A stretch of DNA of 64,000 nt from Macrostomum lignano. Lineage: Eukaryota. The stretch covers positions 124,001-188,000 of the forward strand of contig NIVC01001189.1 in assembly GCA_002269645.1 (NCBI GenBank). The letters are read 5' to 3'. The notes under the pieces were generated by a model that did no database searches, was not told the DNA's origin, and saw only the letters and a program-made list of their open reading frames with translations. This document shows positions 1,752 through 40,924 of this stretch, piece by piece (positions within the stretch are counted from its first letter, which is position 1; each line of letters starts with the position of its first letter). Both the position numbers and the translations under genes were made by a program.

Positions 1752-1768
1752 CGGATGCGGGACAGCAT
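1752..1768 (-). CDS. Candidate micro first exon of a PDE4 isoform skipping the UCR1 PKA exon (MLSRI+phase 2)
   Basis: acaATG CTG TCC CGC ATC CG|gtacgt; phase 2 matches the phase at the end of the UCR1 exon; very short, could be chance. Confidence 0.25.
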
Positions 1769-3383: not shown

Positions 3384-3507
3384 AGTCATTAATTTAGAGA
3401 AAGGTATTACTCGTAGGACCAGGGATAGAGAGGAGATTGGTAAATCTAAAAACACCAAGCATGGTATGAGATAATTACGCAAACACGACAGTATCCAGTC
3501 CACTTAC

Positions 3508-3672
3508 AAATCGCTTGTCATAGAGGAGTTCCTCGACGCCTTCGGTGACACATCGAAGTCAGAGTCAGACCTGTACAGGAAGGACTCGCGCCGCTGGTGT
3601 GGCAGGTGCTGCAGCACCAGGCCGCTGGTGCCCGGCTGCCCATCGGGCCGATGGCCAGCGTTCTCATCGAAG
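3508..3672 (-). CDS. PDE4: cAMP-specific phosphodiesterase 4 (dunce-like), first common UCR1 exon; rest of gene lies beyond the left window edge
   Basis: Manual translation [54 protein letters not shown] matches the PDE4 UCR1 signature ([16 protein letters not shown]..SRNSS). Acceptor ctaacgattcctacttcag|C, donor TT|gtaagt; 165 nt, phase 2/2. Confidence 0.95.
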
Positions 3673-3979
3673 CTGAAGTAGGAATCGTTAGAGATGGCGA
3701 GTGGGAGTGAGTACCGGTGCTTGACCTCATTTGACCCGACCTGAGTTGACCCAATCCGGTCAATCTTGATCGGAAGTTTTCTTTGAATTCAAAGTAGCTT
3801 TCATTAACCCAGCAACGGAAAGTGCACCTGAATTATCTCTGACTATTATTGTGCTTTCTTAGCCCAATTAGAATGCCGTGTTGAATATTATTATTCAGAA
3901 TTCGGCCAGGAAATGAGGTTTATTCGATTATGCAAATAGGCCGGCAGGCAAGCGCTGAATCGAAATGAAGGAACTGACT

Positions 3980-4388
3980 GCATTGCCGCAATCAGCAGCG
4001 GGATTCGGGCTTGTCAACAGTCTATCAGCTGCATTGCCGCAATCAGCAGCGGGATTCGGGCTTGTCAACAGTCTATCAGCTGCATTGCCGCAATCAGCAG
4101 CGGGATTCGGGCTTGTCAACAGTCTATCAGCTGCATTGCCGCAATCAGCAGCGGGATTCGGGCTTGTCAACAGTCTATCAGCTGCATTGCCGCAATCAGC
4201 AGCGGGATTCGGGCTTGTCAACAGTCTATCAGCTGCATTGCCGCAATCAGCAGCGGGATTCGGGCTTGTCAACAGTCTATCAGCTGCATTGCCGCAATCA
4301 GCAGCGGGATTCGGGCTTGTCAACAGTCTATCAGCTGCATTGCCGCAATCAGCAGCGGGATTCGGGCTTATCAACAGTCTATCAGCAG
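3980..4388 (+). repeat. 51-bp minisatellite, 8 copies
   Basis: Unit gcattgccgcaatcagcagcgggattcgggcttgtcaacagtctatcagct. Confidence 0.95.
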
Positions 4389-4544
4389 CTGAGGACTGTT
4401 CATCAGCCGGGATGAACTGCAAAACAAACTTCATCGATCATTGGGAGCCGATTCAATATAAGAGATTAAAGTGTGACAGGTGTGCCAAGCAGCTTATGAA
4501 TTTAATTGACTCCAGTTTGGCAGTCTTACATGTAGAGGGTAGAT

Positions 4545-4841
4545 ACGTAGAGAGTAGAGAGGAGAGAGGAGAGAGCAGAGAGGAGTGATTAGAGAGTAAG
4601 AGAGGAGGGAGAAGAGAGGAGAGAGGAGAGAAGAGAGATGAGAGAGTAGAGAGGAGAGAGGAGAGAGGAGAGATGAGAGAGGAGAGATGAGAGAGCAGAT
4701 AGGAGAGGGGAGAGATAAGAGAAGAGAGGAGAGAGGAGAGAGGAGAGAGGAGAGATGAGAGAAGAGAGAAGAGAGATGAGAGAGTAGAGAGAAGAGAGGA
4801 GAGAGGAGAGATGAGAGAGCAGAGAGGAGAGGGGAGAGATA

Positions 4842-4874
<33 letters not shown>

Positions 4875-5075
4875 AGAGAAAAGAAAGGAGAGAGGAAAGA
4901 GAAAAGAGGAGAAAAGTTTTAAAGGCATCAAATCTTACTTTAACACACATATACTCCTCTACCTCTATTCCAACTATTTAACAAGTCTTTGTTTGAGAAT
5001 GACTTCTGATTTAAGAGTGTATGAAAAAAAATAGTTCCGGGGATTGAAATTCACCGGATTTTAAGTTCATGGGTT
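4545..5075 (-). repeat. Dispersed repeat: unique head plus long purine/pyrimidine tract, homologous to 62130-62750
   Basis: Reverse complement shares cccggaactattttt..cata..gaagtcat.ctcaaacaaa.acttgttaa..gttaaa.taagatttga.gccttt with 62159-62278, then a CT-rich tract. Confidence 0.75.
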
Positions 5076-6289
5076 TTAACAGCTTGTCGCAAATATACTC
5101 ATATTTAGAGATAGCGAATTAGAGAAAGGAAAGGGGTTTCTAGCATTGGTGAGTCAAGAAGGGGGTTGGGGCGATCGATAGCGGTTACAGTACAGAGCGA
5201 AGGAGGGGGGGCGAGGCAGGTAAATTGTATATTAATTTGATAATTGAATATGAGCGTATTGAAAATAGGCAGAAATGGCTTTAAAAGAGCGACAGCACTT
5301 GTCCCTAGCGCAATCCTATGGTATTGTCTATGGCCTTCATCTTTTTGTACGCAAAAGCTTATTTCTGCCTACTTTCAAGGGCTAACGAATCGGTACCCAG
5401 TGCTCGAATCCTGGACAGATAGGAATCACTACACACTAAGAAGCGCTTTGCTACCGAACTCTCGCTCCCTCATTCCCAAGGAACTTCTACTAGCGACCTT
5501 GAAAAGGCGCCGCATCATACAATGGCAGGAGAAATAAGCAAGAAGAGGCACTGGGCATTGTCTTTCCGGTGTTGCGTGTCTGGGAAGGGGGCCCTTCGCC
5601 GGCCGGCCTGGCTGCACGTGTTCGGCCTTAAAGTACGGTCGGAATTCGCTTATTCGACCGACTGGATGCCTGCGCATAGGCAAACCATTGCAAAACCAAC
5701 AGGCGGCGGCACAGCAGGCGGTTACGAAGCCCGAGCCGAAGGAAAAGTGATGGAGAGTGCGCGAAGCTGTTCGCTGGTTTCCCCGTAACACAACGAATGT
5801 CACTCTGCCGGGAGGAACTGGGCAGCGAAAAGATAGATAGAGTAGGAAAGTGGAAGAGAAAGAAGGGGATGGAGTTGGAAAGGGATGAAACTCTCTTCTT
5901 TACCGCATTGTGTTTTTATGCAATATTAGTGCAACTGGGCGAGCAGCTGAAGAAGTCTTGAAACTAGAAGCGATTTAGACAGACTTATATTATCCTACAT
6001 CCAGTTAGCCACTAATATCTACAATACCGAATCCGAATTTTTGTTCCGAGCCCCTGAAATCTAAAGTTCTAGTTCGAAAATCCCTAGATCCAGGCTCCTA
6101 TATTCGATATCCCGGATGCAAAGCAAAATATTCGGGTAAAAGATTCAATTATGGAGCAGTCAAACAGAATAAGTTGAAGGTCCAGGATCCAAGGTCGCAC
6201 AACCAAGGTCCCAAATCGAAGGTCCAGAAACCAAGGTTCCAGACTCAATGTCCCAAATCAGAGGTCCCAGATCCAAGTTCAGAGATCAA

Positions 6290-6960
6290 AGATCCCAGTC
6301 CCAAGGTCCCAGTTCCAAGGTCCCAGATCCAAGGTCCCAGTTCCAAGGTCCCAGATCCAAGGTCCCAGATCCAAGATCCTAGATCCAAGGTCCCAGATCC
6401 AAGGTCCCAGATCCAAGGTCCCAGATCCAAGGTCCCAGATCCAAGATCCCAGATCCAAGGTCCCAGATCCAAGGTCCCAGATCCAAGATCTCAGATCCAA
6501 GGTCCCAGATCCAAGGTCCCAGATCCAAGGTCCCAGATCCAAGGTCCCAGATCCAAGGTCCCAGATCCAAGGTCCCAGATCCAAGGTCCCAGATCCAAGG
6601 TCCCAGATCCAAGGTCCCAGATCCAAGGTCCCAGATCCAAGGTCCCAGATCCAAGGTCCCAGATCCAAGGTCCCAGATCCAAGGTCCCAGATCCAAGGTC
6701 CCAGATCCAAGGTCCCAGATCCAAGGTCCCAGATCCAAGGTCCCAGATCCAAGGTCCCAGATCCAAGGTCCCAGATCCAAGGTCCCAGATCCAAGGTCCC
6801 AGATCCAAGGTCCCAGATCCAAGGTCCCAGATCCAAGGTCCCAGATCCAAGGTCCCAGATCCAAGGTCCCAGATCCAAGGTCCCAGATCCAAGGTCCCAG
6901 ATCCAAGGTCCCAGATCCAAGGTCCCAGATCCAAGGTCCCAGATCCAAGGTCCCAGATCT
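6290..6960 (+). repeat. 14-bp minisatellite
   Basis: Unit ccaaggtcccagat. Confidence 0.95.
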
Positions 6961-6985
6961 AAGGTCCTGAGTCCCAGTCGCGCAC

Positions 6986-7320
6986 CCGAGCATCTGGCGG
7001 GTCCGAGTGACTTTCACGGTGCTGCTTGTGAGCACGGAGCCAACAGGTGACGGCGCAGCTGAGGCGGGCACGAAGCCCTGCTGCATGTTCTTGATTATGC
7101 GGACCCGGCGCCGCTTCAAGATCTTCTTAGTGACGGTGATGTCCCCATTCGGCGTTGGGATCACCGAAGTCTCGTACTGGATCTCCTCCTGCGGCGGCAG
7201 CTCCTCAGTCTCCGTCCACTCCTCCAGTGCTGGCTGCTGCGACTCGTCCGGGTGCTCCGGAAGGCTGGCCAAGAGGCTCTGCATGGTCGGCTGCGGTTTG
7301 CTTTGCTTTCTTGCTTGCAA
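6986..7320 (-). CDS. PDE4: PDE4 alternative first exon A (MQARKQSK...TRTRQML+GG)
   Basis: ATG 7320, open frame to CTC GG|gtgcgc; phase 2 joins UCR1 as ...QMLG-FDEN; donor is non-optimal. Confidence 0.65.
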
Positions 7321-8369
7321 AGCAGCTGTTTTTGTCTCTTTAAGACACGCAGAATTGAGACAGAAAGCAGAGATGGCGGGACAGGCGAGGCTAAGCTGGC
7401 AGTGGCGGCCCTCTGTTTAGCTAGAGCCATTATGTATAAGGCCTTGTATAGTTCCCCGCCAACAGCCGGCCGAGCCGTTGGCACATCCCGGACACGCTCG
7501 CTGACGCGAAGCCCAGTGGGCCGGCGCCCCGCGGGTCCTCCGGAATCTCATCCCTCTACTGCTGGCCCGCGTGAAAGAGAGGCCGGGATCGGGGATTCGG
7601 GAGGCGGGGAGGGAAGAGGAGAGGGCGGATGCGACGAGAGAGATGGGGGGAAAGAAAATGAAAGTGGAGATGGAGAAACAGCCGGCTGCTGCGGGAGTTC
7701 ACAGAGATTCGATTTAAAATTTGCTTTGCGCAAAGTTGAGACTCCCGGGGGGCTCATTGGCTCAGGCGGGATCGGCACTGGTTTATAAACAGGAAGCTGC
7801 GATCCGGCTTCAACATCTCTGGATGTCGTCCTTAGTTAAAGCTTGCCTCAGTTTTGTTGCCCCCTCCCCGAGGGAAGATGAGCCGCTGGGTCTGGGCGGT
7901 GGGCGGTGGGCAGGCAGAGACCCAAAGAGAATTAATGCGGAACTGCCGCCCTGCCAGCCGGTAGCAGAAGAGGTGGGAACCCTGTGTCTCCCCCCCCCCC
8001 CTACCCTCGACCCAGTCCGGTCGCGCGTGCATCATTGAAGCGAAGAAATTAGGTCGCATGAATTCCTAGAATACAGGATGAAAATGTCGGAGATCCGCAG
8101 ATCATGACGAAGGGAATTCGGTCATCGGAGTGTGAGCAAAATTCACCAGGGAGTTGGACAGGGACTTTGGGAACAACTTGGATCGGTGTTGAAACGATAA
8201 TTGATTACCTGAGACTTGGGTCAAATACTGTCCCTTTGACTGCTGCCAATAAACTGGGGAAATGTAGAAATTTAACTAATTATTAATGAAGTCGCGTTGT
8301 TCGATGAATTAGCTACTGCTGAAGCTTATTAAGTTATTTTCTTAGAAAATAATTTCTTAACTTGCTCAT

Positions 8370-8776
8370 GCATTGTGAGTTGGATTGCTCAGGCATTGTG
8401 AGTTGGATTGCTCAGGCATTGTGAGTTGGAGTGCTCAGGCATTGTGAGTTGGATTGCTCAGGCATTGTGAGTTGGAGTGCTCAGGCATTGTGAGTTGGAT
8501 TGCTCAGGCATTGTGAGTTGGAGTGCTCAGGCATTGTGAGTTGGATTGCTCAGGCATTGTGAGTTGGAGTGCTCAGGCATTGTGAGTTGGATTGCTCAGG
8601 CATTGTGAGTTGGAGTGCTCAGGCATTGTGAGTTGGATTGCTCAGGCATTGTGAGTTGGAGTGCTCAGGCATTGTGAGTTGGATTGCTCATGCATTGTGA
8701 GTTGGATTGCTCATGCATTGTGAGTTGGATTGCTCAGGCATTGTGAGTTGGATTGCTCATGCATTGTGAGTTGGTT
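8370..8776 (+). repeat. 23-bp minisatellite
   Basis: Unit gcattgtgagttggattgctcag with alternating t/g variant. Confidence 0.95.
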
Positions 8777-9182
8777 TGCTCTGAAGCTTCATATCATATA
8801 AAATGACGGTTTCCAAACGTCTACTAGAGGATCCTCTTTGACGAATGGGGAAATTTTTCTGCTGGTGGGATGTCCAGAGCTTATTTCCCAATCCATAGTA
8901 AAGCTATTTCGCGGGAGCTGAAAACACCGCACTGGACTGGAGCAAGTAGTGCGCATAGTGGGTCTGTCAGAGCCGCTATATCTAAAATCTTCGCGCCAGT
9001 CTCTAGGCATTAGCTTCCCCCCTGCTGCGCACGCACCCGACAGAAGCCCGAGGCCCCATTCGGCACTGGTTCCCCCAAGCTGGGTTGCTAACGAGAGCGG
9101 AGGGGAGTCCAGAGAATGGACTGACGCGAGACCCGGAGCCCCGAGCCAATTTAGTGGACTGGCGCGGCTCATTCCGTCTCAC

Positions 9183-9235
9183 CCCCAGTCTCTCGCCCGC
9201 ATCTCTACAGCTCCTCTATCTATCAGTCCGAGCAT
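9183..9235 (-). CDS. Weak candidate additional PDE4 first exon (MLGLIDRGAVEMRARDW+GG)
   Basis: ATG 9235, 17 codons then GG|gtgaga in phase 2; short, may be chance. Confidence 0.25.
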
Positions 9236-9366
9236 CTATTCGCCCAAAAGCCCCAAGGCTCGAAGTGACAACAGTGCGTAGCGAGATGCAAATCTGAATT
9301 TCCAGCATTTCACTGGCTGCACTCGGGCTGGGCTTGGTCAGCTTCCTCAGCTTAGCTTGCAGCTAC

Positions 9367-9572
9367 CTGGTAGTTCGCTCCCAGACTCTCTGCACCAGCC
9401 GGGCGTGAATGAAGTGCCTTCTAGCGGCGTGCGCTGTACTGTTGGTCCACATCAGCGAGTGCCGCCGCTGGGTCCACCTACCCGAGCCACCTGAGGCGGC
9501 GGCGGCGGTTGCGGCAGCTGCTGAGCCGGCTGTTGCCAGACGCCTTAATTCTCGACGACGTCCGAATTCCAT
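9367..9572 (-). CDS. PDE4: PDE4 alternative first exon B (MEFGRRREL...QRRHSL...WERTT+AG)
   Basis: ATG 9572, ACC AG|gtagct phase 2; RRHS motif. Confidence 0.7.
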
Positions 9573-10379
9573 TCGGCTCTCTTATCACTAATATAGTTAT
9601 TATTAGCTAAAGCCTATAGGCCAAATTTCTGTTGCGCCTTCAACCTGCCGCTTGAATTGCCTCTTCTTTTTTCTCACGTTGCTTTTTTTATAAGCAGCGT
9701 CGGGGCATCGGATGAGTTCTCTGCCGTCTCCCCACGGGCCTCTCTTTCCACCCCTGTGGATACTTAATTGGGCCGGCTGAGGATTGAGTTACGCCAGGGA
9801 GAGGCTGGAGAAGGAAATAGACTGACTGAGAGCGACAGGAAGACGGTGCTCCTTCTCGGCGGCGAAAGTGGGGAGGCAGCTGGGTCTGGGCTCGGTCTGC
9901 TTTTGCAATTGGATTGACATCGCTGCCGTGACATCTGCCGCCGAAGTGCGTCACTCGCTCTCTCCAATTCTCCCTTTCCCCTGCGCCCAGCGCTCCCAGA
10001 TCCCACTAACTGCCTCTCCGGGGTCTCGGCTCACTTTTATTCACGGAAGCTCAGCCAGAAGCAGAAAAAATAGCCTTCGCGAAATAAACGGAAATTATTG
10101 AGGAGGCTCCTGCGGAATCAACACGAGTTCAATCTCACTTTGAATAGCAGCCCATCCTGTTTGATAGATTGTCTTGATTAAACTGAATTAAACTCGACTT
10201 AATAAAAATTAGTATTTTGTTCGGTGGGTTGATAAGGATATGTAGGCAATTTATACCTGCTCGAGTTGATTGAAAATGATTTCTTTCAGTTATCACTCGA
10301 AATTTTGACTATCAAACAGTTTTGTTGAAAGATTTGAAGTATTTGTGCAATCCGAAAGTAAATTCTAATCGGATTTTAG

Positions 10380-10665
10380 AGTTTGTGAAGTTTAGGGTTT
10401 GTTTAGTGTAGAGTCTGAAGTTTAGGGTTCGTGAAGTTTAGGGTCCGTGAAGTTTAGGGTCCGTCAAGTTTTGGGTTTGTAAAGTTTAGGGTTTGTGTAG
10501 TTTAGAGTCTGTAAAGTTTAGAGTCTGTGAAGTTTAGAGTCTGTGAAGTTTAGAGTCTGTGAAGTTTAGAGTCTGTAAAGTTTAGAGTCTGTGAAGTTTA
10601 GGGTTTGTGAAGTTTAAGGTCTGTGAAATGTAGGGTTTGTGAAATTTAAAGTTTGCGTAGTTTAA
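10380..10665 (+). repeat. Degenerate ~16-bp minisatellite containing TTTAGGG-like cores
   Basis: gtgaagtttagggttt / gtgaagtttagagtct units. Confidence 0.85.
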
Positions 10666-10732
10666 GTTTTGTGTAGTTTCGGCACTGTGACCCCCCCTTC
10701 CCCCCAGAGGACAGCTGACCCAGCGGACAGAC

Positions 10733-10908
10733 CTGGCCAGGGTGCTCAGCGCAGAGAATCGAACGCTGCGGCAGCCGCCTGCGCCTGGAGCGGCATTCGG
10801 CGCAGACACGCTCCGCGAGTGCAAGTACATCGCAGCTGCGGGCTGGCGGAGCCGCACTGGGAGCTGCTGCTGCTGCTGCTGCTGCGGATTGCCAGTCGCT
10901 GCTTGCAT
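10733..10908 (-). CDS. PDE4: PDE4 alternative first exon C (MQAATGNPQQQQ...RFSALSTLA+AG)
   Basis: ATG 10908 with in-frame TAA just upstream; GCC AG|gtctgt phase 2; donor non-optimal. Confidence 0.55.
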
Positions 10909-11934
10909 AACTGCTTAGGTGGAATCAGTTTGTATTGAGCAAATCCTATACTTCTCACACAATCTCCGTCTCCGCTGTCAAACTATATAGGCATGCGACT
11001 CTCCCCACCCCTCCTTGAGCTCCACTGCTGCCCCCCTTCTCCCGTTCTCTTCCCTCCATGGCAAGCGCGGGCTTGTCCCCGGGCAGCTTAGTAGGGCGCA
11101 AGGAGAAACGCGAGCAAGTCTAGAGGCAGCAAGGTTGACTTGTGCGTTGCTTCCGATCGAGGGGGCTTCGGCCCAGCCAGATGACGCGGTGGATGACGCG
11201 GCGAGTCCAAATCCCGACCTGCAGCCTGACAGCGAAGTGGGCGAAGGAGGAAAACGGGGAGAACGAAGGAGCTGGGTGAGGTGAAAGAGAGAGACGAAAC
11301 GGAAAGTGTGAGTTGTCCACTAGTGGAGTGGGAAGTTTTTAGGGGCTGGGGGATCATGAATGCACACAATGGGTGTTGAGAACATCGCTAAGAAAACGTT
11401 GCATAGTCGAACAAGAGGGCCGTAAGTCACATTGATTTTATTGTTTTGGCTAAGAGAAGGTGCACTGAGAAAGTGGAGTTTCCCTATGGAATTTCCCTAT
11501 GCAAAGTTTTGTAGGGAAAAATAGTTGATCAAGTTTACTGTTCACGTTCTATGTTACTTAACTAAAGCTTTTAAATTTGGATTGGGGTCTCTTATAAAAG
11601 TAATTTCGATGCTTTTCTGCTAAAATTTTTGTTCCATTTTGTATGTTCAGCCTTATGTGTTCGCTCTTACCAAATTAGTCATGAAAAAATTCATTTAAAA
11701 ATTATAACTCATACTAGCAATCAGCGCCCCCCGTTGGGGAGCCAAAATGCAGTACAAGTTTTCTAATAAACTACATGTAGCGTCTCTTTGAAATATACTT
11801 TGTAAGCAGTCCCTTGTAAGCCTTGACATGTCAGCAATTCCCCCCACAAGCCTTAACATATCAACAATTCCCCTCTTGACATTTCAGCGATGTCCCACAT
11901 AAGCCTTGAAATCTTAAAAAATCTGTCAACCTTC

Positions 11935-11978
11935 TAACCCTAACCCTAGCCTAACCCTAGCCCTAACCCTAACCCTAA
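11935..11978 (+). repeat. Short interstitial telomere-like (CCCTAA)n tract
   Basis: aaccctaaccctagcctaaccctagccctaaccctaaccctaa. Confidence 0.8.
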
Positions 11979-12625
11979 AGTATTAACATTTCAGTAATTC
12001 TCCCCAAGAGTCATTATAGCACTACACCATTATAGCGATTCCCTGCAAGCCACAACAACGTAGGGATTCCCAAATGAATCTCTTAATTTCGACATGACGC
12101 TTCTTTTATTTTTACATGACGCTTTTTCTATCATTAGAACTCAAAATTCGAGATCAGGCAACCAGGATTTTCGGGACAACAAGTCATTAAAAATGTTTTA
12201 AAGTAGAGCCAACTACTTTAAGTAGTTAATTTCTTAATCCTATTGATGGAGTGGGCTAAATCCTTGAAAAATATTATATTGAACTTTTTTTTCAAAACTT
12301 TCTTCCTTCCACAACTTGGGCGTTTTATTGTAAGCCGTATTTTGAAATTTCACGGGGAATTACTACTTCCATTTGGGCGTCTGTTTAGAGTTTTTCGTAT
12401 AACTTTGCGCTTGGCTAATAATTTATTGATTAACAAAGTTAACTCTCACTTGTCATTCGTTTTCGCTTTCTGTCTATGGCCAAATTAAGCTAAGAACTAA
12501 ATAAACATTTTAAATACGAGGCTCGTGAAGTGCTTTAGAATGATCTGATCTGTGTAGCTGCTATGCGGCTATTCACAGTCTTATAGCTCAACCACCAACC
12601 TGAATGGCCTTCGATCCGGACTCAC

Positions 12626-12945
12626 CAAGTGTTGCAAGAGTGCCGCCTGTACAGCAGCTGCAGGCCCACGCCAAGTCTGCTGTGCCTGTAGGCACCGGAC
12701 GGCATCGTGTCAAACCTGACTCGCTGGCAGTTCACATCCGCCACCGGCTCCTGCAGAACAGGCAGTTGCAGCATGGGAATCTGCGACACCTGCTGCTGCT
12801 GCTGCTTCTGCGCCCGTCGTTCCGTCGCTTGTCGACGGGACTCGCCTCGGCCGTTGTTGAAATTCACTTTTAGCCGAGCGAGCCTTTCGAGCTGGAGTTC
12901 GGAAGTTTTTTTCTTGCCCGACGCCTTTCTGCTTCTAGTGGACAA
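12626..12945 (-). CDS. PDE4: PDE4 alternative first exon D (MSTRSRKASGKKK...LYRRHSCNT+TG)
   Basis: ACT TG|gtgagt phase 2; spliced product RRHSCNTC-FDEN resembles vertebrate PDE4D3 RRHSWIC-FDVD. Confidence 0.85.
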
Positions 12946-14440: not shown

Positions 14441-14568
14441 TGCGGCAGGGACCTCCGACCAACCATGGCCAGCATCGTCTGCCGGCTGCCGCCACCGCTG
14501 CCTCGGGCCTCCCGGTGCGGCGGCACCTGCGACCAGTCCACGGAAACTCGCTTGTTCCTGGCTTGCAT
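14441..14568 (-). CDS. PDE4: PDE4 alternative first exon E (MQARNKRVSVDWSQ...MVGRRSLP+CA)
   Basis: aaaATG at 14568 after an in-frame stop; 42 codons then CA|gtgagt phase 2; below the ORF-track size cut-off. Confidence 0.7.
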
Positions 14569-15664
14569 TTTCACCCGATCCGGCTGAGACTCTGCTCACC
14601 TCCGAGTCCGAGTCTGTCCGACCAATTTATCCTCATCCGGGCGCGTATTCGCCCTCTCGCTTCGCTGCCTCGACCAAATTCGACGTCACAATGGAGCAGC
14701 AAATCGTTTCGGCAAAAGCGTTATTTCTACCTTCCTATTCTCTCTCCCCCTCTCTCTTCTCGACCTTCTCAGACTAGCCGCATCTCGAGGTCCAGGGGCC
14801 ACCTGCATCGTTCACTGCGAAATCATTGATTGATTTGGAGGGGACGGTGAGCCTACGCGGCAATAAGTAAACCGCCGATGAAGGGGGCCGCAATGGTAAT
14901 TCGGCGAGCGCAGTAGGGCGTGTAAAAAATGATTGCGAGTCTCGGACCTGTAAATGCAATTCCTGAATACGTTTGATTTATCGGCTAACATTCGACGATT
15001 GTGTAAAAACAGACCAGCGAGAGGTCAAAACCAGAAGACATTTTTAATTGAGGAAAGAATTCGGATTCGATTACAAATACGCAAAAACGTCGCAAATATC
15101 ACTTTACTGACCAGTTTCTCAAAGGGAGCTGGGAAACTTGGGAAGAAGTAAAGCTACCTTCTTTCTCCACGCTAAGAGGATCTAAAGTGCTCTCGGCACC
15201 GAACAAGACTACCGTTGATTGGGCGCAGTTCCCACTCGTTCTGCAGTGCCAGCGTGGAGGGGACCTGGCCGGGGAAGAGATCAACATCCGACTAAATCGA
15301 ATTCGCCTTTCTGGCGCGACTTGATTGCACTTTGCGTGCGTGGCACTGTATTCAATCTCATTGCCGCTTCAGCCACATCTACCGGCACTAGAATCTATCT
15401 TCAGAGATTCTATGAGTGCTCACTCACAGCAATTGACTGGCAACCCCAGGGTGATACTCGAAGACCCTGAACTTTGATTTACCTTAGTACTTTCTCTGAA
15501 GTCCATGTAGCATAGAAGCTGTAACTGTAGAACTGATGTCAAAATTATTTTGTTCAAGCTATTGAATTTGAGCTTGGTGTTCTTGTTAAGACGTTACTAG
15601 AGCCTTAGTGCTAGTTACTAGGGATAGGTAGCTGAGCGTTAACGCATCCAACGCTAAAGCCCTT

Positions 15665-16490: not shown

Positions 16491-17743
16491 AGCGCCGCAG
16501 AAAATAGATTTTAGGTACAAAACAGGCCCTGCGGCACGCGTTGTTCCGCTTACAAACGGCACCCCTATTTAAGGCTCAGAGAAGCCAACTAGAACAAGTC
16601 CGGCACGCGATTGAAATCTGAAGTTTATTTTTTAGCTCTTCCATGATTCCCTTTCCGATCAGATTTTCTGCTTGAAAGTGTTGATCCAGTCAAGCCCGCA
16701 ACACAGAGACGGCGACGCCCGGAGGGGAGAAAATTTGAGTAGCGAAAGAAGCCCAGCACGCGATCCGTGAGCACTTGAAAAGAAGCACCAAATATGTACT
16801 ATTACTATCGACAGAAAATAACATGACTGCCTCCATCTGATGGACCCACGGTTTTATGACACAATTAGCGAAATTAGCTCGGTGATATGGCTGGGAAACT
16901 GCGTAGTTTTTAATCAATCCGGCGATGTAATGTACGAGCTAACAACTAGCAGCGAGATTCACCTTTTTAACTGAAAAGCCAGTGCAATCAAAAGGTAGGG
17001 TGACAAAGCAATAAATTTTACTGCCCCATTCTCTGACCTAATGCTACATATAGACTATCTCACTGACGCTACTACCCTTACCATCGCTGTATCTATGGCC
17101 CGTCTCTCACTGACGCTACTACCCTTACCATCGCTGTATCTATGGCCCGTCTCTCACTGACGCTACTACCCTTACCATCGCTGTGTCTATGGCCCGTCTC
17201 TCACTGACGCTACTACCCTTACCATCGCTGTGTCTATGGCCCGTCTCTCTCACTGGAGCTACTACCCTTACCATCGCTGTGTCTATGGCCCGTCTCTCAC
17301 TGACGCTACTACCCTTACCATCGCTGTGTCTATGGCCCGTCTCTCACTGACGCTACTACCCTTACCATCGCTGTATCTATGGCCCACCTCTCACTGACGC
17401 TACTACCCTTACCATCGCTGTATCTATGGCCCGACTCTCTCACTGGAGCCACTACCCTTACCATCGCTGTGTCTATGGCCCGTCTCTCTCACTGGAGCTA
17501 CTACCCATACCATCGCTGTGTCTATGGCCCGACTCTCACTGGGGCTACTACCCTTACCATCGCTGTGTCTATGGCCCGACTCTCACTGGGGCTACTACCC
17601 TTACCATCGCTGTGTCTATGGCCCGTCTCTCACTGACGCTACTACCCTTACCATCGCTGTGTCTATGGCCCGACTCTCTCACTGGAGCTACTACCCTTAC
17701 CATCGCTGTGTCTATGGCCCGACTCTCTCACTGGAGCTACTAC

Positions 17744-18542
17744 CATGGATGAATGAATAGAATGGATTGCTATTCTGGCTCTGGCTATTTTCGTTTTTGA
17801 CTCTTTTGCATCCGGTTCCCCCCCCCCGTGCCTTTTCATTGGTTGATGATTGCCATAGACAATTTTCGGCCTTCGCCCCTTTCTTTCGATGCACAAGCGC
17901 AAAGAACTGAGAATCTCAGTTACTTGCAGAGAATATCGAGCGCTCGATATTCTCTGGTTACTTGTTTGTCAATTGAAGTTGTTAATTGAAGCAGAGGAAT
18001 GATAACAAATCCCCTGCAAATTACAACAGTAATGATTTCAGATTTTCATGTCGAGGGTGCGATGACAATGCTACAATAATGGTCAAGACAAACTGCGGTG
18101 CCATCTTCACATTGCTCATCCATTCGGTCAGTTGAAGTGGAGATTTGACAGGAAAAGAAAAGAAGCTGATATTCACTCCAGTGTCGTCCCGCATCCCTGA
18201 CTTGGATAGACATCCTAGTGCAGCACAGTAGCGCTTTGAGCCATTAGGCATGGTAGTGATAAAAGTAAAATAAGCAGTGAGTAAACAACAACAACAAGCG
18301 CAAAGAACTGATTTTATTGTAGACGAATCGACTCTCGAATCGTGCTTGTAGGTCTTCCCCCTTTATTTCAAAACACGAGCGAAAGCGCTTGTGCATCGAA
18401 AGAAAGGGGCGAAGGCCGAAAATTGTCTATGGCAATCATCAACCAATGAAAAGGCACGGGGGGGGGGGAACCGGATGCAAAAGAGTCAAAAACGAAAATA
18501 GCCAGAGCCAGAATAGCAATCCATTCTATTCATTCATCCATG
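17744..18542 (-). mobile_element. Non-autonomous P-superfamily element with ~157-bp TIRs, 8-bp TSD and truncated THAP ORF
   Basis: TIRs 17744-17900 / 18385-18542 starting CATGGATGAATG; TSD gctactac at 17736-17743 and 18543-18550; ORF 18021-18251 MPNGSKRYCAALGC...SFFSFP...W is a THAP N-terminus. Confidence 0.85.
17927..17956. mobile_element. 30-bp perfect palindromic insertion with 8-bp TSD
   Basis: cagagaatatcgagcgctcgatattctctg flanked by gttacttg on both sides. Confidence 0.8.
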
Positions 18543-21075
18543 GCTACTACCCTTACCATCGCTGTGTCTATGGCCCGTCTCTCTCACTGGAGCTACTACC
18601 CTTACCATCGCTGTGTCTATGGCCCGTCTCTCTCACTGGAGCTACTACCCTTACCATCGCTGTGTCTATGGCCCGTCTCTCACTGACGCTACTACCCTTA
18701 CCATCGCTGTGTCTATGGCCCGTCTCTCACTGACGCTACTACCCTTACCATCGCTGTATCTATGGCCCGTCTCTCACTGACGCTACTACCCTTACCATCG
18801 CTGTGTCTATGGCCCGTCTCTCACTGACGCTACTACCCTTACCATCGCTGTGTCTATGGCCCGTCTCTCACTGACGCTACTACCCTTACCATCGCTGTGT
18901 CTATGGCCCGTCTCTCACTGACGCTACTACCCTTACCATCGCTGTGTCTATGGCCCGACTCTCACTGGAGCTACTACCCTTACCATCGCTGTGTCTATGG
19001 CCCGACTCTCTCACTGGAGCTACTACCCTTACCATCGCTGTGTCTATGGCCCGTCTCTCACTGACGCTACTACCCTTACCATCGCTGTGTCTATGGCCCA
19101 TCTCTCACTGACGCTACTACCCTTACCATCGCTGTATCTATGGCCCGTCTCTCACTGACGCTACTACCCTTACCATCGCTGTGTCTATGGCCCGTCTCTC
19201 ACTGACGCTACTACCCTTACCATCGCTGTGTCTATGGCCCGTCTCTCACTGACGCTACTACCCTTACCATCGCTGTGTCTATGGCCCGACTCTCACTGGA
19301 GCTACTACCCTTACCATCGCTGTGTCTATGGCCCGACTCTCACTGGAGCTACTACCCTTACCATCGCTGTGTCTATGGCCCGACTCTCACTGGAGCTACT
19401 ACCCTTACCATCGCTGTGTCTATGGCCCGTCTCTCTCACTGGAGCTACTACCCTTACCATCGCTGTGTCTATGGCCCGTCTCTCACTGACGCTACTACCC
19501 TTACCATCGCTGTGTCTATGGCCCGACTCTCACTGGAGCTACTACCCTTACCATCGCTGTGTCTATGGCCCGTCTCTCACTGACGCTACTACCCTTACCA
19601 TCGCTGTATCTATGGCCCGTCTCTCACTGACGCTACTACCCTTACCATCGCTGTGTCTATGGCCCGTCTCTCACTGACGCTACTACCCTTACCATCGCTG
19701 TGTCTATGGCCCGACTCTCACTGGAGCTACTACCCTTACCATCGCTGTGTCTATGGCCCGTCTCTCACTGACGCTACTACCCTTACCATCGCTGTGTCTA
19801 TGGCCCGACTCTCACTGGAGCTACTACCCTTACCATCGCTGTGTCTATGGCCCGACTCTCTCACTGGAGCTACTACCCTTACCATCGCTGTGTCTATGGC
19901 CCGTCTCTCACTGACGCTACTACCCTTACCATCGCTGTATCTATGGCCCGTCTCTCACTGACGCTACTACCCTTACCATCGCTGTATCTATGGCCCGTCT
20001 CTCACTGACGCTACTACCCTTACCATCGCTGTGTCTATGGCCCGTCTCTCACTGACGCTACTACCCTTACCATCGCTGTGTCTATGGCCCGTCTCTCACT
20101 GACGCTACTACCCTTACCATCGCTGTGTCTATGGCCCGTCTCTCACTGACGCTACTACCCTTACCATCGCTGTGTCTATGGCCCGACTCTCACTGGAGCT
20201 ACTACCCTTACCATCGCTGTGTCTATGGCCCGACTCTCTCACTGGAGCTACTACCCTTACCATCGCTGTGTCTATGGCCCGTCTCTCACTGACGCTACTA
20301 CCCTTACCATCGCTGTGTCTATGGCCCATCTCTCACTGACGCTACTACCCTTACCATCGCTGTGTCTATGGCCCGTCTCTCACTGACGCTACTACCCTTA
20401 CCATCGCTGTGTCTATGGCCCGTCTCTCACTGACGCTACTACCCTTACCATCGCTGTGTCTATGGCCCGACTCTCTCACTGGAGCCACTACCCTTACCAT
20501 CGCTGTGTCTATGGCCCGTCTCTCACTGACGCTACTACCCTTACCATCGCTGTGTCTATGGCCCGTCTCTCACTGACGCTACTACCCTTACCATCGCTGT
20601 GTCTATGGCCCGACTCTCTCACTGGAGCCACTACCCTTACCATCGCTGTGTCTATGGCCCGTCTCTCACTGACGCTACTACCCTTACCATCGCTGTGTCT
20701 ATGGCCCGACTCTCACTGGAGCTACTACCCTTACCATCGCTGTGTCTATGGCCCGACTCTCACTGGAGCTACTACCCTTACCATCGCTGTGTCTATGGCC
20801 CGACTCTCACTGGAGCTACTACCCTTACCATCGCTGTGTCTATGGCCCGTCTCTCACTGGAGCTACTACCCTTACCATCGCTGTGTCTATGGCCCGACTC
20901 TCACTGGAGCTACTACCCTTACCATCGCTGTGTCTATGGCCCGACTCTCACTGGAGCTACTACCCTCCACAGCTCTGCCCTCCTATTGTTTTGTCTATGG
21001 CCCGACTGTCGCTGATTTCCCTCGTTCCCAAAAACGTTGATGCGTAGCATTTTAAACGAAGCGGCTCGCACTCAC

Positions 21076-21197
21076 ATCGCCAGGGTGTGCCTGCGGCACC
21101 GGTGCCTGGCTGAAAAGTTGCGCAGTTCGCCCAGATCGCCGAAGCTCTCTTCGTCCTGCTGGCTGACTAGCACAGTAGGCACTTGCAAACGGGCCAT
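21076..21197 (-). CDS. PDE4: PDE4 alternative first exon F (MARLQVPTVLVSQQDEESF...CRRHTLA+AT)
   Basis: ATG 21197 (an in-frame start is also annotated at 21278); GCG AT|gtgagt phase 2; RRHT motif. Confidence 0.8.
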
Positions 21198-22074
21198 GGT
21201 TGCGTTGCGGCGACTTTCTCTCTCAATAAAGATCAACCAGCTGGTTTGGGGCCGGGCAAAACAGGAAATAGAAAACAACTGGAGTTGACTGGCGGCGACC
21301 CGGGAGCGGAGATTATAGACTTAAGCCTCGACGGAACCCATCCTCCGGCGAAAGAGTGTGGCATAAGGGTGACTGAAAGTTAGTTTTTTTTTAAACTCAG
21401 CCGCTTGCCCCATTTTCAAGCCTTCGTCACTCTTTGGCCCGCTGCACAAGTGCTTAACGGCATTGGAGCGTGCGGGCAGCCTGGCTGAGCACTGGACGGG
21501 CGAATGAGTGGCCAGCCAAGAGCAGCGGGGGCAGAGAAGAGAGGAGAGAGCCGGGGCGGGAAAGATATCCTGCGACCGCGAGGCCGCTGCCGATTTTTGT
21601 GTTTTGTTTTGCCTGACTGAGCTCACAGCATGGGCTGGGAGCCGCCTTTCGACTCTGCCCCCCCCCCCCAACTCACCCGCTTCTGAAAGCCGGTGCCGCA
21701 CCGGCGCTTAGGGGATTCCGGCAAAAACGGGAAGAAGAAGAAGGCGGTGGAAAAAATTCCCATCCTCCTGCTCCCCATCATAGCAGCACAAATTCTGCAA
21801 TAGCTGCGCTATCGATGGCCGAACACGCGCGAATTCGAGCATGCGTGGAAAAACTGGCGATGGGGCAGCGAGCTTCTTCTAGGGGATGCAGAAGGAAATA
21901 AAAATTCACGACTGTGGAACAGAGGGCCGAGCTTTGGTCCTGGGGTTGTAAAATGAAACTATTAAATTTATGCAATGTGGAGCTCCCTTAATGGTCATTC
22001 TGGGGCGAGTTTAATCAAATCTTGGAAGAAGTTTTGAAGTTTTGCTTAGAAATCTGGGGTTTAAATTAGTATAA

Positions 22075-22740
22075 ACCCATCTAGAATGAGGACCCATCTA
22101 GAATGAGGACCCATCTGGAATGAGGACCCATCTAGAATGAGGACCCATCTGGAATGAGGACCCATCTGGAATGAGGACCCATCTGGAATGAGGACCCATC
22201 TGGAATGAGGACCCATCTAGAATGAGGACCCATCTGGAATGAGGACCCATCTGGAATGAGGACCCATCTGGAATGAGGACCCATCTGGAATGAGGACCCA
22301 TCTAGAATGAGGACCCATCTAGAATGAGGACCCATCTGGAATGAGGACCCGTCTGGAATGAGGACCCATCTGGAATGAGGACCCATCTGGAATGAGGACC
22401 CATCTGGAATGAGGACCCATCTAGAATGAGGACCCATCTAGAATGAGGACCCGTCTGGAATGAGGACCCATCTGTAATGAGGACCCATCTGGAATGAGGA
22501 CCCATCTGGAATGAGGACCCATCTGTAATGAGGACCCATCTGGAATGAGGACCCATCTGGAATGAGGACCCATCTGGAATGAGGACCCATCTGTAATGAG
22601 GACCCATCTGTAATGAGGACCCATCTGTAATGAGGACCCATCTGTAATGAGGACTCATCTGGAATGAGGACCCATCTGGAATGAGGACCCATGTGGAATG
22701 AGGATCCATCTGTAATGAGGACCCAACTAGAATGAGGACT
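22075..22740 (+). repeat. 17-bp minisatellite, array 1
   Basis: Unit atctggaatgaggaccc. Confidence 0.95.
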
Positions 22741-23559
22741 CAAGGAGCATGACGCTAGAAGTTGAGCAAGGCGGACGATTAAGCCAAATAAAAGTGCACA
22801 ACGACAAGTACTTATTCAGTGAGTAAAAGCAGGCAGATCGAGGGTCTGGCAATTCTGCCGGCTCTTCATCTCTCCATTCAGCGCTCTCACTCAGTCTCTC
22901 AGAGGTGCAATGTAAGGGAAATATATGAGCAGCAGGAGAGACTCCCTGGTTCCGGAGGCAAGGCAAGGAATCCCCCGGTGGTGCCTCATCAATTATCACT
23001 GCAGCTGGTCTGTCCGTGAAGCTTGAGCAGGAAAGTTGCGGAGGCCTACTGGGAGCACAGAAAATATGGAAACTGACGCAGCTCGATTCCCCTGGCGCAC
23101 CGGCAATCCCTGTGAGCAGTAGGCGGATTCCCCACTGTACCAGCCTACTCCGGAACTCGCAGATTTGAAGCAAACGGAGTCGCCACCTGTGTTTGCTGTG
23201 CGTGATCAGGTGTCGGCCTGCCTCCCTACCTTCTGCGCGGTAACTTTGTAATTTCCCCCGAAATGATATTAAACCAGAGAGAGGAAGAATAGTCTAACAA
23301 TTAAGAGTTAAACAAACCCCATAGCGAACTTCGGTGTGTGTGCTGCAGTTTGTGCTCAGCGTGCTCAACACTCGTGCTCAAGTACTCGAGTCCGATTCCG
23401 TGAGCGGCCACATTTATTTAGAGCTCCAGCACTAAAATTCGCCAGAGGACTGTTGTATCAAGGGCTCAGAAATGCCTGCATGCTGTCACCTTGGTTTTTC
23501 TGCAGAGGTCACAGCTCCCTAAGCGAAGTAACCGACTATAGTCCATCTAGAATGGAATG

Positions 23560-24160
23560 AAATGAAATGAGGACCCATCTGGAATGAAGAACTATCTGGA
23601 ATGAGGACCCGTCTGGAATGAGGACCCATCTGGAATGACGACCCATCTGGAATGAGGACCCGTCTGGAATGAGGACCCATCTGTAATGAGGACCCATCTG
23701 GAATGAGGACCCATCTGGAATGAAGAACTATCTGGAATGAGGACCCATCTGGAATGAGGACCCATCTGGAATGAGGACCCATCTGGAATGAGGACCCATC
23801 TGGAATGAGGACCCATCTGTAATGAGGACCCATCTGGAATGAGGACCCATCTGGAATGAGGACCCATCTGGTATGAGGACCCATCTGGAATGAGGACCCA
23901 TCTGGAATGAGGACCCATCTGGAATGAGGACCCATCTGGAATGAGGACCCATCTGGAATGAGGACCCATCTGGAATGAGGACCCATCTGGAATGAGGACC
24001 CATCTGGAATGAGGACCCATCTGGAATGAGGACCCATCTGGAATGAGGACCCATCTGGAATGAGGACCCATCTGGAATGAGGACCCATCTGGAATGAGGA
24101 CCCATCTGGAATGAGGACCCATCTGGAATGAGGACCCATCTGGAATGAGGACCCATCTGA
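23560..24160 (+). repeat. 17-bp minisatellite, array 2 (same unit and orientation as array 1)
   Basis: Unit atctggaatgaggaccc. Confidence 0.95.
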
Positions 24161-25585
24161 AATCTGGAATGAAATGAGGATCTGGAATGGAATGAGGAAC
24201 TAACCGACTAAAGCTGCATTCAACCAAAGAGGGGATCAGTTTCGTGAGCAGTTCTCCTGCAATGAGGAAAGTTGTTCTGTCATGCCCTTGTTTGAAATTC
24301 GTCATCTCTAATTGGGTCAGCGCCTTCGCTGCCAGTATCTGAAAGTTAAGCAGCCTTGGCCGCGGTTAGTACGTGGCTGAGGCAGGTCAAAGCTTGGCAT
24401 ATTTCTACAGTTTATATCTTCACGGTCAATTGTGAGACAGAGGCTTCAAATCACCTGACCTCTTTGTCAAATTAACTCTGCACCCCACAGTCCCTAATAG
24501 TCTAATTGCCCGAGCTACTCACTAGCTTGAGAATTGACAGCTACAAAACCAGGCGCAGTCGGAGCAGCGGGTCTCCGGTGGAGCCGATCGATTGGAGATT
24601 GAATTCCACTGACCGCGGCTTCAGAGCCAGGCCGGGCAGGCAGCGGCTTGATGGAGAAAGAGATTGAAATTGGATGAGGCAGGCGGGGCTAATGAGACTG
24701 CATGCGGGAGGCGCTAGGAGTGAGCATAAATGGGATTTGTTAAGTTTTCCTTCCCCGGACCAGATGGAGGCGAGAGTCAGTCTGGAGGCAACCTGCTCAA
24801 ACTGCTCACTTTGTCCAGCTGCACTTTTATGGAGATCCTAGTTTGACCAGAGCGAGCTCAATAATCATGTTTAGCTGCTTGCCAAAAGAACTCATTAGGA
24901 AAAGTGAGAAGTACTTTCCGAGCTTAAAACACCTGAGAACTGTAGTTTCCGATCCCCTGTTTCTTGGAATCCTCGGCTCATCTCGAATGTTTTCTTGGAA
25001 ACGAACTTTTCTGAAAGTAAATTGCTCTCTGCCTCTCTTTTTGCACTCCCAAAGTAACTTTTTCATTCCTTTCCTTTTTCTATTGGCACTGCTAAGCTTG
25101 TAGCTGGAGTGAGTAGTTTAGCTGTACTCTTCTGCTAATACCCTTCAGGCTAATATTTCCCATTTGAACTCTTAGCTTCACAAAGATCTGGAAGTTCTCT
25201 AAGCACCTGTTTTTCTCCTGGTTTCTCAGAAAATTAAGAAAAAAACAGAAATAGAAGAATGGCGCTGCTTTAGAGGCAATTAGGGATGCTGCTCGCTTTC
25301 TAGGAAGCAGGTGCGATCGATTTTTGGGGTTAACTGAGCTGGGATTTCAATTTCTGCCAGTACCGTCTCTCTGAGCAGTCAAAGGTAGCCAGTTTGCTGT
25401 GTAACTGAGACGAATAAAGAAAAAGCAATTGAGCTTGTAGAAGAAAGCGGAGAAATACTCCATTTATAATTTAATGCCAAACATGTTCGCTACCCAGAAT
25501 GCTACTTTTAGTAGTACGGTGCGGAAAATTCTATTCTGAAGTGCAGCTGGACACCGGACGGGCGGCCTGGGCCAAGCGGACTCAC

Positions 25586-25917
25586 GCTGAGCTGAAGCTC
25601 TTGGCCGGGCAAGGCCGTCGATGGCTGCTTCTGCCGGCCGGCGCCGCCGATGAGCAGTCCGACTTGGAGATGCGCAGCAGGTTGCGCCGCCGCCTGCGCC
25701 ACACCTCAGCGTCGCCGTGGGAAAAGTGCCGACTGGCGTAGCCGCCGCCGCCGCACAGGGCGCAGCTGTCTCTGGCTGCCTCGCTGTCCAGCACAATGGG
25801 AGGCACCGGCAGCGGCGGTAGCGAAGTTCGGTGAGACTGCGGCTTGTCAGCATCTGCCGCTTCATCATCCTGCCTGCTCCACAAGTGCTGCTGCTCCAGC
25901 TTGTGATCGACTGGCAT
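25586..25917 (-). CDS. PDE4: PDE4 alternative first exon G (MPVDHKLEQQ...PAKSFSS+GC)
   Basis: aaaATG 25917; TCA GC|gtgagt phase 2; 110 codons + 2 nt. Confidence 0.8.
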
Positions 25918-26694
25918 TTTTGCAATTCGGAATCTTCGGTTTGTTTTTTAGCCGTTCCTAAGTTTCTTTATGGTTTTTTCAGACATTTATTAATAAGCTG
26001 GCAGCCAATGATTGTTCGGAAAGGAAATCACTCGCTTCGAGTTGATTCCTGGATTCCAGGTCGGCCTTAGCTAGAATTTGGCTTCTGTACAAGGAGGCCC
26101 GCCCATCCACTCAGCTCCACCCGCCGTATCAGCAGGGCGCTCTCAAAGGAGAGAAACTAAAGAGGAACAGGAATAAAAGGGAGCAGAGGAAGGCGGTCCG
26201 GACACTCGATGAATCCGAGCCCTGCTCTGCCCCAGTTTTGCTTGGAGAGTAGGCCGCAAGCACTGAGAACCGCGAAGGGGGCCGGGGGGAACTCACCAAG
26301 GAAAATGAGGAGTCCAACCCCGCTATAGTCTTCCTCCCGTGACGCATGAAGCGGCCCCCCGCTGCGCTGCGCCTTATCAGCAGCATAAAATTTCTTTGTA
26401 GCCAGCAGCGAGCCAGCGGCCAACTCTCGCTAGACTCAGCCGGTTCGACTATTCTCCGGCTCTGCTGCACTTTTACTCTTCTTGATGACTATCTGAGTTG
26501 ACGGTTGAGTAGAACAGTTTAAAAAGCACAGTTTCTTTTGACGCAGAGTTACAGTCTGTTTACGAAGTAACTAAAAAAACAAAAACTATTTCTCGAATGG
26601 TTTTTGATAATTACGAGTACGTTGATACTGTATGCGTGGGAGGCTTAGGATTAGGGATTAAAGTTCTGACAGTACTGGACTTCGTGTGCATGCA

Positions 26695-26998
26695 CTGAAG
26701 GCAGTACTGGAGACGGTGTACTGAAGGCAGTACTGGAGACGGTGTACTGAAGGCAGTACTGGAGACGGTGTACTGAAGGCAGTACTGGAGACGGTGTACT
26801 GAAGGCAGTACTGGAGACGGTGTACTGAAGGCAGTACTGGAGACGGTGTACTGAAGGCAGTACTGGAGACGGTGTACTGAAGGCAGTACTGGAGACGGTG
26901 TACTGAAGGCAGTACTGGAGACGGTGTACTGAAGGCAGTACTGGAGACGGTGTACTGAAGGCAGTACTGGAGACGGTGTACTGAAGGCAGTACTGGAG
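26695..26998 (+). repeat. 26-bp minisatellite
   Basis: Unit gaaggcagtactggagacggtgtact. Confidence 0.95.
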
Positions 26999-27433
26999 TC
27001 AGGAAAGGAAAAAGCATCAAAACTTGCCATTTGAGAGGAAGAAATGATAGAAATTTGGCAAGAAAAAAGCAATGGGAGCAACTGCTCCGATTGTACCTGT
27101 TCTCTGCAACTAAGTGTTAATTTTTGCACCTGGTGATGCTAGTGAATTATGAATCGGCTGGGACAAACACAGCAATCTCTGGCCGATCTTATCGCCAGCT
27201 ACAGAACCGCCTATTTATGCTACATAGAACTGCCCACATCAATAATTCAGATCGGCGGGGTGGCTTTGGGTCCGGAAATTTTGCCAAAATTTGTCTGCAT
27301 TTCTTTACACGGTCTCTCTCAGTTCTTCAGTTCCCAGTTCCCTTAAAAAATCCTCAGTTCCCAACTCCCTCAGTTCCCAACTCCCTCAGTTCCCGACTCC
27401 CTCAGTTCCCCAGTCCTCTCAGCTGCAGCTCAC

Positions 27434-27771
27434 CGCTCCCTGCTACGGCTGTGCGTGATCCTTATCCTGGGCATGCTGGGCGCCTGGTTGCACCTGACAG
27501 GCTGCCCTTCCGCCGGCCCGCTGCCGTAGAGGACGTGGTCGGAGTGCCGCCTCTCGTGCTGCTGGGGCGTTTCGGGTGGCGCCAGAAGGTCCTGCTTGAG
27601 ATGTCGGAGCGGGTTCTGGTCTGTGCGTGTGTGCGTATAAAGCTGGGACCGCGGGTTCTGGTCTGTGCATGTGTGCGTATAAAGCTGGGACCGCGGGTTC
27701 TGGTCTGTGCATGTGTGCGTATAAAGCTGGGACCGCATCGTGAAACACAATCTGCTAAATGACATCCACAC
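27434..27771 (-). CDS. PDE4: PDE4 alternative first exon H (..MRSQLYTHT..ERRHSD..RITHSRSRE+CG), with a 3 x 42-bp in-frame repeat
   Basis: GAG CG|gtgagc phase 2; RRHS motif; start codon uncertain. Confidence 0.7.
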
Positions 27772-28169: not shown

Positions 28170-28738
<569 letters not shown>

Positions 28739-32446: not shown

Positions 32447-35514
<3,068 letters not shown>

Positions 35515-40844: not shown

Positions 40845-40924
40845 CTGGTGGCGGGGGAAAGATCAACTAAAAATTCAACTCTCCTACGTGTCTTTGGAAC
40901 TCAAGTCAATCTCATGATTAAGGA

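Follow-up and report, generated by a model that had tools for sequence, protein, structure and literature searches.

Candidate alternative 5' coding exons upstream of the UCR1 exon of a PDE4/dunce gene in the flatworm Macrostomum lignano

More than 20 PDE4 isoforms are known from mammals, each with a unique N-terminus involved in targeting (PMC5872356), and in Drosophila the gene dunce, with several promoters, produces at least 8 transcripts and 5 N-terminal classes (bioRxiv 10.64898/2025.11.29.691281). Here we describe the 5' region of a gene of this type in a window of 64,000 nucleotides of the Macrostomum lignano assembly Mlig_3_7 (GCA_002269645.1), comprising bases 124001-188000 of contig NIVC01001189.1, so that window position x corresponds to contig position x+124000; over window 41512-62951, around an annotated hexokinase, the two match at 100% identity. 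A first-pass annotation of the window had proposed an array of at least eight alternative first exons (E1 to E8, Table 1) feeding a single UCR1 exon, and had interpreted them as a lineage-specific cassette with a layout like that of the protocadherin or UGT1A genes. Our examination of sequence anatomy, phase statistics, homology and codon usage leads us to believe, with a probability of about 70%, that this is a PDE4 5' region in which several alternative 5' coding exons splice to the exon beginning at position 3672, a layout that would be ancestral to metazoans. About five or six such exons are credible.

The first common exon of the gene contains the start of UCR1 with a protein kinase A (PKA) site of the type RRESF(L/I)Y(R/K)SDS found in PDE4 and dunce. 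It was 57.6% identical to dunce by tblastn with a dunce query, and this query identified no other PDE4 exon in the window, including positions 1-3507. A HMMER search of 1.84 billion representative proteins returned 344 proteins at E ≤ 0.001, among which the named matches were PDE4/dunce proteins of insects, a crayfish and a sea cucumber, together with an unnamed sea spider gene model. Judged by this exon, the minus-strand gene is PDE4, a dunce-type cyclic AMP (cAMP)-specific phosphodiesterase, of which the window holds the 5' part. The exon is both entered and left in phase 2. As its first base is the third base of a codon and completes the junction codon, any upstream exon has to end in phase 2, as the first-pass annotation had stated.

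The same junction is found in other animals. In 120 vertebrate PDE4D proteins there are at least six N-terminal classes, all of which switch exactly before FDV[DE]NG, and many database fragments represent genomic read-through of the acceptor (...FFLFSLCS/FDVENG; here and below a slash in a peptide or donor marks the splice junction), which indicates the same intron position as in M. lignano. Among 165 distinct PDE4 N-terminal variants, none had K, Q, E, M or W as residue -1 of the junction, although together these five account for 11% of the positions neighbouring it. Such a bias is to be expected if the third codon base is a pyrimidine contributed by the common exon, as it is with a conserved phase-2 intron. 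At acceptor 3672 the joining likewise takes place in phase 2 just before FD(V/E)xNG. These comparisons indicate an origin before the flatworm lineage for the junction and its phase, and for at least the E6 type of upstream exon, which is orthologous to a segment of insect dunce (see below). Since insects and vertebrates have them in common, the layout is not lineage-specific as had been proposed.

All eight candidate frames are open from the proposed start to the proposed donor, each measures 3n+2 nt, and splicing to 3672 creates a stop codon in none of them. Three of the proposed starts are not ATG codons: TTG stands at 7320 and at 12945, and GTG at 27771, and the frames concerned (E1, E4, and E8) have their first ATGs at 7284, 12774 and 27765, respectively. 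The five donors that had been described as gtgagt or gtgagc are those of E4 to E8. Frames of this kind prove nothing by themselves, since an ATG-initiated open reading frame (ORF) of at least 120 nt that holds a GT at 3n+2 is commonplace here: 51 of the 76 minus-strand ORFs between 3673 and 40081 are of this description, the plus strand has 54 of 72, and Markov simulations gave about 35. Such numbers favor the explanation that the candidates arose by chance in intron or intergenic DNA rich in GC and repeats, with at most E6 being real, and so do the non-consensus donors of E1-E3 and the fact that no annotated or database protein holds the peptides. Against a chance origin stands the phase of the consensus donors. 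The enriched donor motif of M. lignano is GT[G/A]AG, present in ~65% of 187,627 cis-splice regions (PMC8629364), and on the minus strand there are six GTRAGY donors in phase 2 (at 12626, 14441, 21076, 21627, 25586, and 27434) that end an ATG ORF of 120 nt or more, versus one in phase 0 and one in phase 1. The plus strand has 0 to 1 such cases, and the simulations, with a mean of 1.39, did not reach six in any of 100 runs. A generic donor weight matrix did not separate the candidates (5.5 to 6.0 for E1-E3, 5.5 for the UCR1 donor) and was for this reason not used as evidence.

Table 1. Candidate exons, other phase-2 frames and neighboring genes, in window coordinates.
Feature	Position	Strand	Details
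First common PDE4 exon	3508-3672	-	UCR1 start with PKA site RRES; acceptor ctacttcag/C, donor TT/GTAAGT
E1	6986-7284	-	ACCATGC start at 7284; 99 codons + 2 nt; non-consensus donor CGG/GTGCGC
E2	9367-9572	-	ATG 9572; non-consensus donor CAG/GTAGCT; in-frame RRHS
E3	10733-10908	-	ATG 10908; non-consensus donor CAG/GTCTGT; 16-bp minisatellite 43 bp beyond
E4	12626-12774	-	ATG 12774; donor TTG/GTGAGT; end ...LQLLYRRHSCNT, giving RRHSCNTC/FDENAG
E5	14441-14568	-	ATG 14568; donor GCA/GTGAGT; end ...MVGRRSLP, giving RRSLPH/FDENAG
E6	21076-21197	-	ACCATGG start; 40 codons + 2 nt; donor GAT/GTGAGT; peptide MARLQVPTVLVSQQDEESFGDLGELRNFSARHRCRRHTLA
E7	25586-25917	-	ATG 25917 (A at -3); 110 codons + 2 nt; donor AGC/GTGAGT
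E8	27434-27765	-	First in-frame ATG 27765; donor GCG/GTGAGC; contains RRHSDHVLYGSGPAEGQPVRCNQ
Extra phase-2 ATG ORF, absent from the first-pass annotation	21627-21781	-	Donor GCT/GTGAGC; codon score 0.07; no homology
Extra short phase-2 ATG ORF, absent from the first-pass annotation	15424-15506	-	83 nt; donor GTGAGC; no other support
Reverse-transcriptase ORF of retroelement	32542-34656	+	704 codons; weak RVT_1 match
Src-family tyrosine kinase gene	40082-43704	-	SH3, SH2 and kinase exons; GenBank-annotated, 561-aa product
Intronless tandem hexokinase gene	46510-47976	-	488 aa; Pfam Hexokinase_1, Hexokinase_2
Intronless tandem hexokinase gene	51512-52951	-	479 aa; Pfam Hexokinase_1, Hexokinase_2

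E6 is the best-supported of the alternative 5' coding exons. Its peptide is homologous to a segment of Drosophila and aphid dunce that ends in RRHTLANVR/FDVENG (in full, ...GSIGDLQKYHSRYLKNRRHTLANVR/FDVENG), and when the product of E6 and UCR1 was compared by BLASTP with cluster P0214 (dunce isoform I of Drosophila, with Q9W4T4 as a member), the alignment was continuous over the junction (E = 3e-19), with GDLGELRNFSARHRCRRHTLAI/FDENAG lying opposite GSIGDLQKYHSRYLKNRRHTLANVR/FDVENG. The E6 part alone reached a local score of 56, versus a shuffled-query maximum of 32.2 ± 3.5. As tblastn of 230 PDE4 N-termini against the window produced mostly low-complexity noise, it was replaced by an end-anchored scan of both strands, in which site 21076 ranked first among 1403 GT sites with 25 open phase-2 codons. 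This rank argues against chance, whereas a ranking of raw local scores against decoy ORFs, which is confounded by repeats, placed E6 6th and E8 14th, below low-complexity segments, and would favor it.

E8 joined to UCR1 also aligned across the junction, with the PDE4 N-terminus of a psyllid (Cyamophila; P0155), as RRHSDHVLYGSGPAEGQPVRCN against RRHSVNLLSGAAAYDGLNVHCN, and its local score of 55 was reached by 2.5% of shuffles. The N-terminal half of E8 is a 42-bp tandem repeat in three copies (27609-27736), coding RSQLYTHTCTDQNP three times. The end of E4, LLYRRHSCNTC/FD, can be likened to LLLRRHSC of a sea cucumber, RRRHSWICG/FDV of the sea spider and FRRHSWIC/FDV of vertebrate PDE4D3. For E1, E2, E3, E5, E7 and the extra ORF at 21627-21781, local alignment with shuffles against PDE4 N-termini gave no significant match. 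No Pfam match was obtained for the N-terminal peptides or for the E6 and UCR1 product, the only signal being a sub-threshold one to DUF4887 on the extended E4 frame, and the variable exons probably code for short, disordered peptides.

The motif common to E4 and E6 is of interest for its position. Translation of the 64 kb in all six frames yields RRH[ST] seven times, and four of the seven occurrences are in frame within E2, E4, E6, and E8, a fourfold concentration that speaks against chance ORFs. In E4 and E6, the two best-supported of these four, the motif lies no more than ~7 residues from the junction, as in mammalian PDE4D3 (RRHS, Ser13), where phosphorylation of Ser13 by PKA enhances mAKAP binding (PMC7770493). 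A GTRAG donor preceded by [RK]Rx[ST] in the last ten residues was found at just two sites on both strands and in all phases, those of E4 and E6, and both are in phase 2 on the minus strand. By analogy with PDE4D3 Ser13, we infer that the RRH[S/T] sequences of E4 and E6, next to the junction, and that of E8, and possibly that of E2, are putative PKA sites. The RRS that E5 has beside the junction departs from the RRxS pattern. E2 contains a weak phase-2 GT at 9451 (GAT/GTGGAC) directly after its in-frame RRHSL, and splicing from there would produce RRHSLI/FDENAG, which is nearer to the pattern of E4, E6 and PDE4D3 than the product of donor 9367.

For codon usage, the window's hexokinase and Src-family exons (~1000 codons from two genes) served as the training set of a model. 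When 445 open segments were scanned, the retroelement ORF ranked first and E7, E4, and E5 ranked second, third and fourth, which is a further point against chance ORFs. E5 scored 0.50 bits per codon, the best of its six frames, and E1, from ATG to donor, reached 0.40 bits per codon, in no frame but its own. Scores were near zero for E2, for E8 (weak) and for the extra ORF at 21781, and the signal of E3 was not frame-specific.

Taking donors, homology, motif and codon usage together, we consider a chance origin of all but E6 very unlikely. E4, E5, E6, E7 and E8, all of which have GTGAGT or GTGAGC donors, are well supported as predicted alternative 5' exons, and E1 is a plausible one. The case for E2 and E3 is weak, and they are indistinguishable from chance ORFs: both have non-consensus donors and no homology, and the codon signal is absent in E2 and not frame-specific in E3. 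Codon usage is the one line of evidence that backs E1, and no exon has an annotated product. Several upstream coding exons thus fit phase-2 splicing to 3672, as the first-pass annotation had proposed, but not all eight, and its count of "at least eight" is not upheld.

The full form of that proposal, with at least eight mutually exclusive first exons in a lineage-specific, protocadherin/UGT1A-like cassette, has in its favor that the frames and phases are as it described them and that no splice makes a stop, and also the codon-usage signal of E1 and the RRHS inside E2. It is contradicted by the occurrence of the junction and at least E6 in insects and of the RRHS type in vertebrates, by the lack of support for E2 and E3, and by the absence of significant paralogy among the exons. 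In an all-against-all Smith-Waterman comparison of the eight exons with shuffles, no pair rose above z = 2.7 and the top alignments were of low complexity. At the DNA level there were no self-matches among the exons beyond flanking repeats. We therefore regard the full proposal as highly improbable. We also considered E4 and E6 as possible duplicates of one another but rejected this, as their similarity is not significant.

Several observations weigh against a set of alternative exons splicing to 3672. The exons for the rest of UCR1, for UCR2 and for the catalytic domain lie beyond the left end of the window, so that an intact gene is assumed. When a 5.8-billion-protein collection was searched by word index, the UCR1 exon retrieved a single metagenomic fragment of 70 aa and nothing else, and the eight N-terminal peptides, concatenated into one query, retrieved no protein at E ≤ 0.001. 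The collection includes the GenBank annotation of GCA_002269645.1, and a human PDE4D query confirmed that eukaryotic PDE4s are present in it; the annotation consequently lends the exons no support through these searches, and speaks no more against them. E4 alone is not significant by local alignment, its score being equalled by 15% of shuffles, and E1, E2, and E3 are without GTRAG donors. The codon model is small and fails leave-one-out on hexokinase, for which reason codon usage is taken as supporting evidence only. Lastly, the segment resembling E6 lies ~500 residues inside the long fly isoform, and E6 might consequently be an internal rather than a first exon.

This last point raises the alternative that the exons are real but that some are used in series, for instance E8 and/or E7 to E6 to UCR1, as in the ~540-residue N-terminus of dunce isoform I. 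In the Drosophila isoforms, which measure 1190-1215 aa, the E6-like segment occupies residues ~490-540, and in the aphid protein it is found at ~387. AG acceptors that are compatible with phase 2 and have pyrimidine tracts are present in the open frame upstream of the ATGs of E4 (12934), E6 (21240 and 21288) and E8 (27847), and the E4 frame is open for 70 codons 5' of ATG 12774, up to 12984. Conversely, this upstream part of E4 scores only 0.09 in codon usage, and every exon from E1 to E8 has its own ATG with an in-frame stop upstream, in the context ACCATG in E1 and E6 and with A at -3 in E5 and E7. The sea spider gene model begins MSDNKVAKLQVP..., close to the start of E6 (MARLQVP), and the vertebrate N-terminal variants each join the common exon directly. 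On balance we judge serial use to be unlikely, and prefer alternative 5' exons that each splice to 3672.

If these alternative exons function as their counterparts in mammals and flies do, each would follow its own promoter and would splice directly to 3672 in phase 2. The outcome would be long PDE4 isoforms that differ in a short N-terminal peptide, and these peptides may direct localisation, regulation or partner binding.

It is also worth considering how transcripts of the locus might begin. About 30% of M. lignano genes are reported to be trans-spliced to a leader that ends in ATG, with YTNCAG as the reported acceptor motif. Such motifs occur on the minus strand at 12891 and 21278, at codon boundaries of the frames that remain open 5' of the ATGs of E4 and E6, and it is a speculative possibility that a leader ATG spliced at these positions would be in frame with E4 and E6.

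Minisatellites lie between the exons, as had been noted, and a tandem-array scan enabled us to place them. By summed array length, tandem arrays make up ~30% of the interval from 3.5 to 27.8 kb. Four of them (6177-6967, 10375-10690, 18543-20966 and 27352-27422) start 12 to 110 bp past the donors of E1, E3, E6, and E8, that of E1 being a 14-bp minisatellite that begins 19 bp beyond the donor. One 47-bp unit makes up two arrays, at 17058-17744 (~14 copies) and 18543-20966 (~51 copies), the latter having higher-order periods of 190, 239 and 378 bp. A perfect (GATA)142 microsatellite is located at 28170-28738, with 100% matches across 569 bp.

Reading leftward along the minus strand, the window contains the two tandem hexokinases, the Src-family kinase gene, the plus-strand retroelement ORF and the PDE4 5' region. 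The Src-family gene is the upstream neighbor of PDE4 on the same strand and bounds its 5' region. Its N-terminus reads MGCFLSRP... and leads into a glutamine-rich stretch, and brute-force reconstruction of the splicing of its 561-aa product with GTRAG/YAG sites only gave no solution. The retroelement ORF, which has the Src-family gene on one side and the PDE4 first exons on the other, is flanked by (CT)n at 32450-32805, and a C-terminal ...VYVGET..., which resembles a GIY-YIG motif without profile confirmation, suggests a Penelope-like element. The two hexokinase copies are ~97% identical across 1254 nt, and the annotation on record has the 479-aa copy only, the 488-aa copy being without an entry. 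Contigs NIVC01003705.1 and NIVC01004366.1 of the same assembly are ~99% identical to window 45485-61340. Collinearity ends at 45485, past which both contigs continue with sequence 81% similar to inverted window 11713-12133; they probably represent duplicated-chromosome redundancy of the assembly together with a dispersed repeat. An Rfam scan of the whole window had zero hits.

The present work provides a first map of the PDE4/dunce 5' region of M. lignano, for which the GenBank protein set that we searched has no product from these exons. The map reveals that insects share the phase-2 junction and one or more of the N-terminal exon types, and that vertebrates, echinoderms and chelicerates share a junction-adjacent PKA-type RRHS/T motif. 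In other respects the locus is an ordinary case of a well-known gene architecture and opens no new question. We tentatively suggest, at somewhat less than even odds, that at least two or three N-terminal exon types predate the protostome-deuterostome split and coexist in one flatworm gene, these being a PDE4D3-like RRHS(W/C) type (E4), a RRHTLA/RRFTVAH type like that of dunce isoform I and PDE4D5 (E6), and a psyllid-like RRHS...CN type (E8). If this is true, targeting exons that bear PKA sites would be an ancestral modular feature of PDE4 rather than inventions of vertebrates or insects, and M. lignano, a regeneration and stem-cell model amenable to transgenesis, would offer a compact, transgenesis-ready system for the study of isoform-specific cAMP compartmentation.

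Among known systems, Drosophila dunce resembles this locus in being one gene with several N-terminal classes before a common FDVENG exon, at an equal intron position and phase. The two differ in that the E6-like segment of the fly closes a ~500-residue N-terminal region, whereas in M. lignano the E6 frame is shut 42 codons upstream of the ACCATGG start and the exons are contained within 24 kb packed with minisatellites. In vertebrate PDE4D, the D3, D4, D5, D7, D8 and D9 types each meet the common exon right before FDV[DE]NG, as is predicted here, and FRRHSWIC/FDV of D3 is similar to RRHSCNTC/FDE of E4, as is QRRFTVAHTC/FDV of D5 to RRHTLAI/FDE of E6. Outside this short basic motif, however, the M. 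lignano peptides cannot be aligned with the vertebrate ones, and vertebrates have four paralogous PDE4 genes extending over hundreds of kilobases, versus the single locus seen in M. lignano. The protocadherin alpha/gamma and UGT1A loci have in common with this one several upstream exons, presumably with their own promoters, that are spliced to shared exons. Their variable exons are tandem paralogues that code for a whole domain, whereas those of M. lignano are short, without mutual similarity and not detectably paralogous, so that the likeness drawn by the first-pass annotation holds for topology only.

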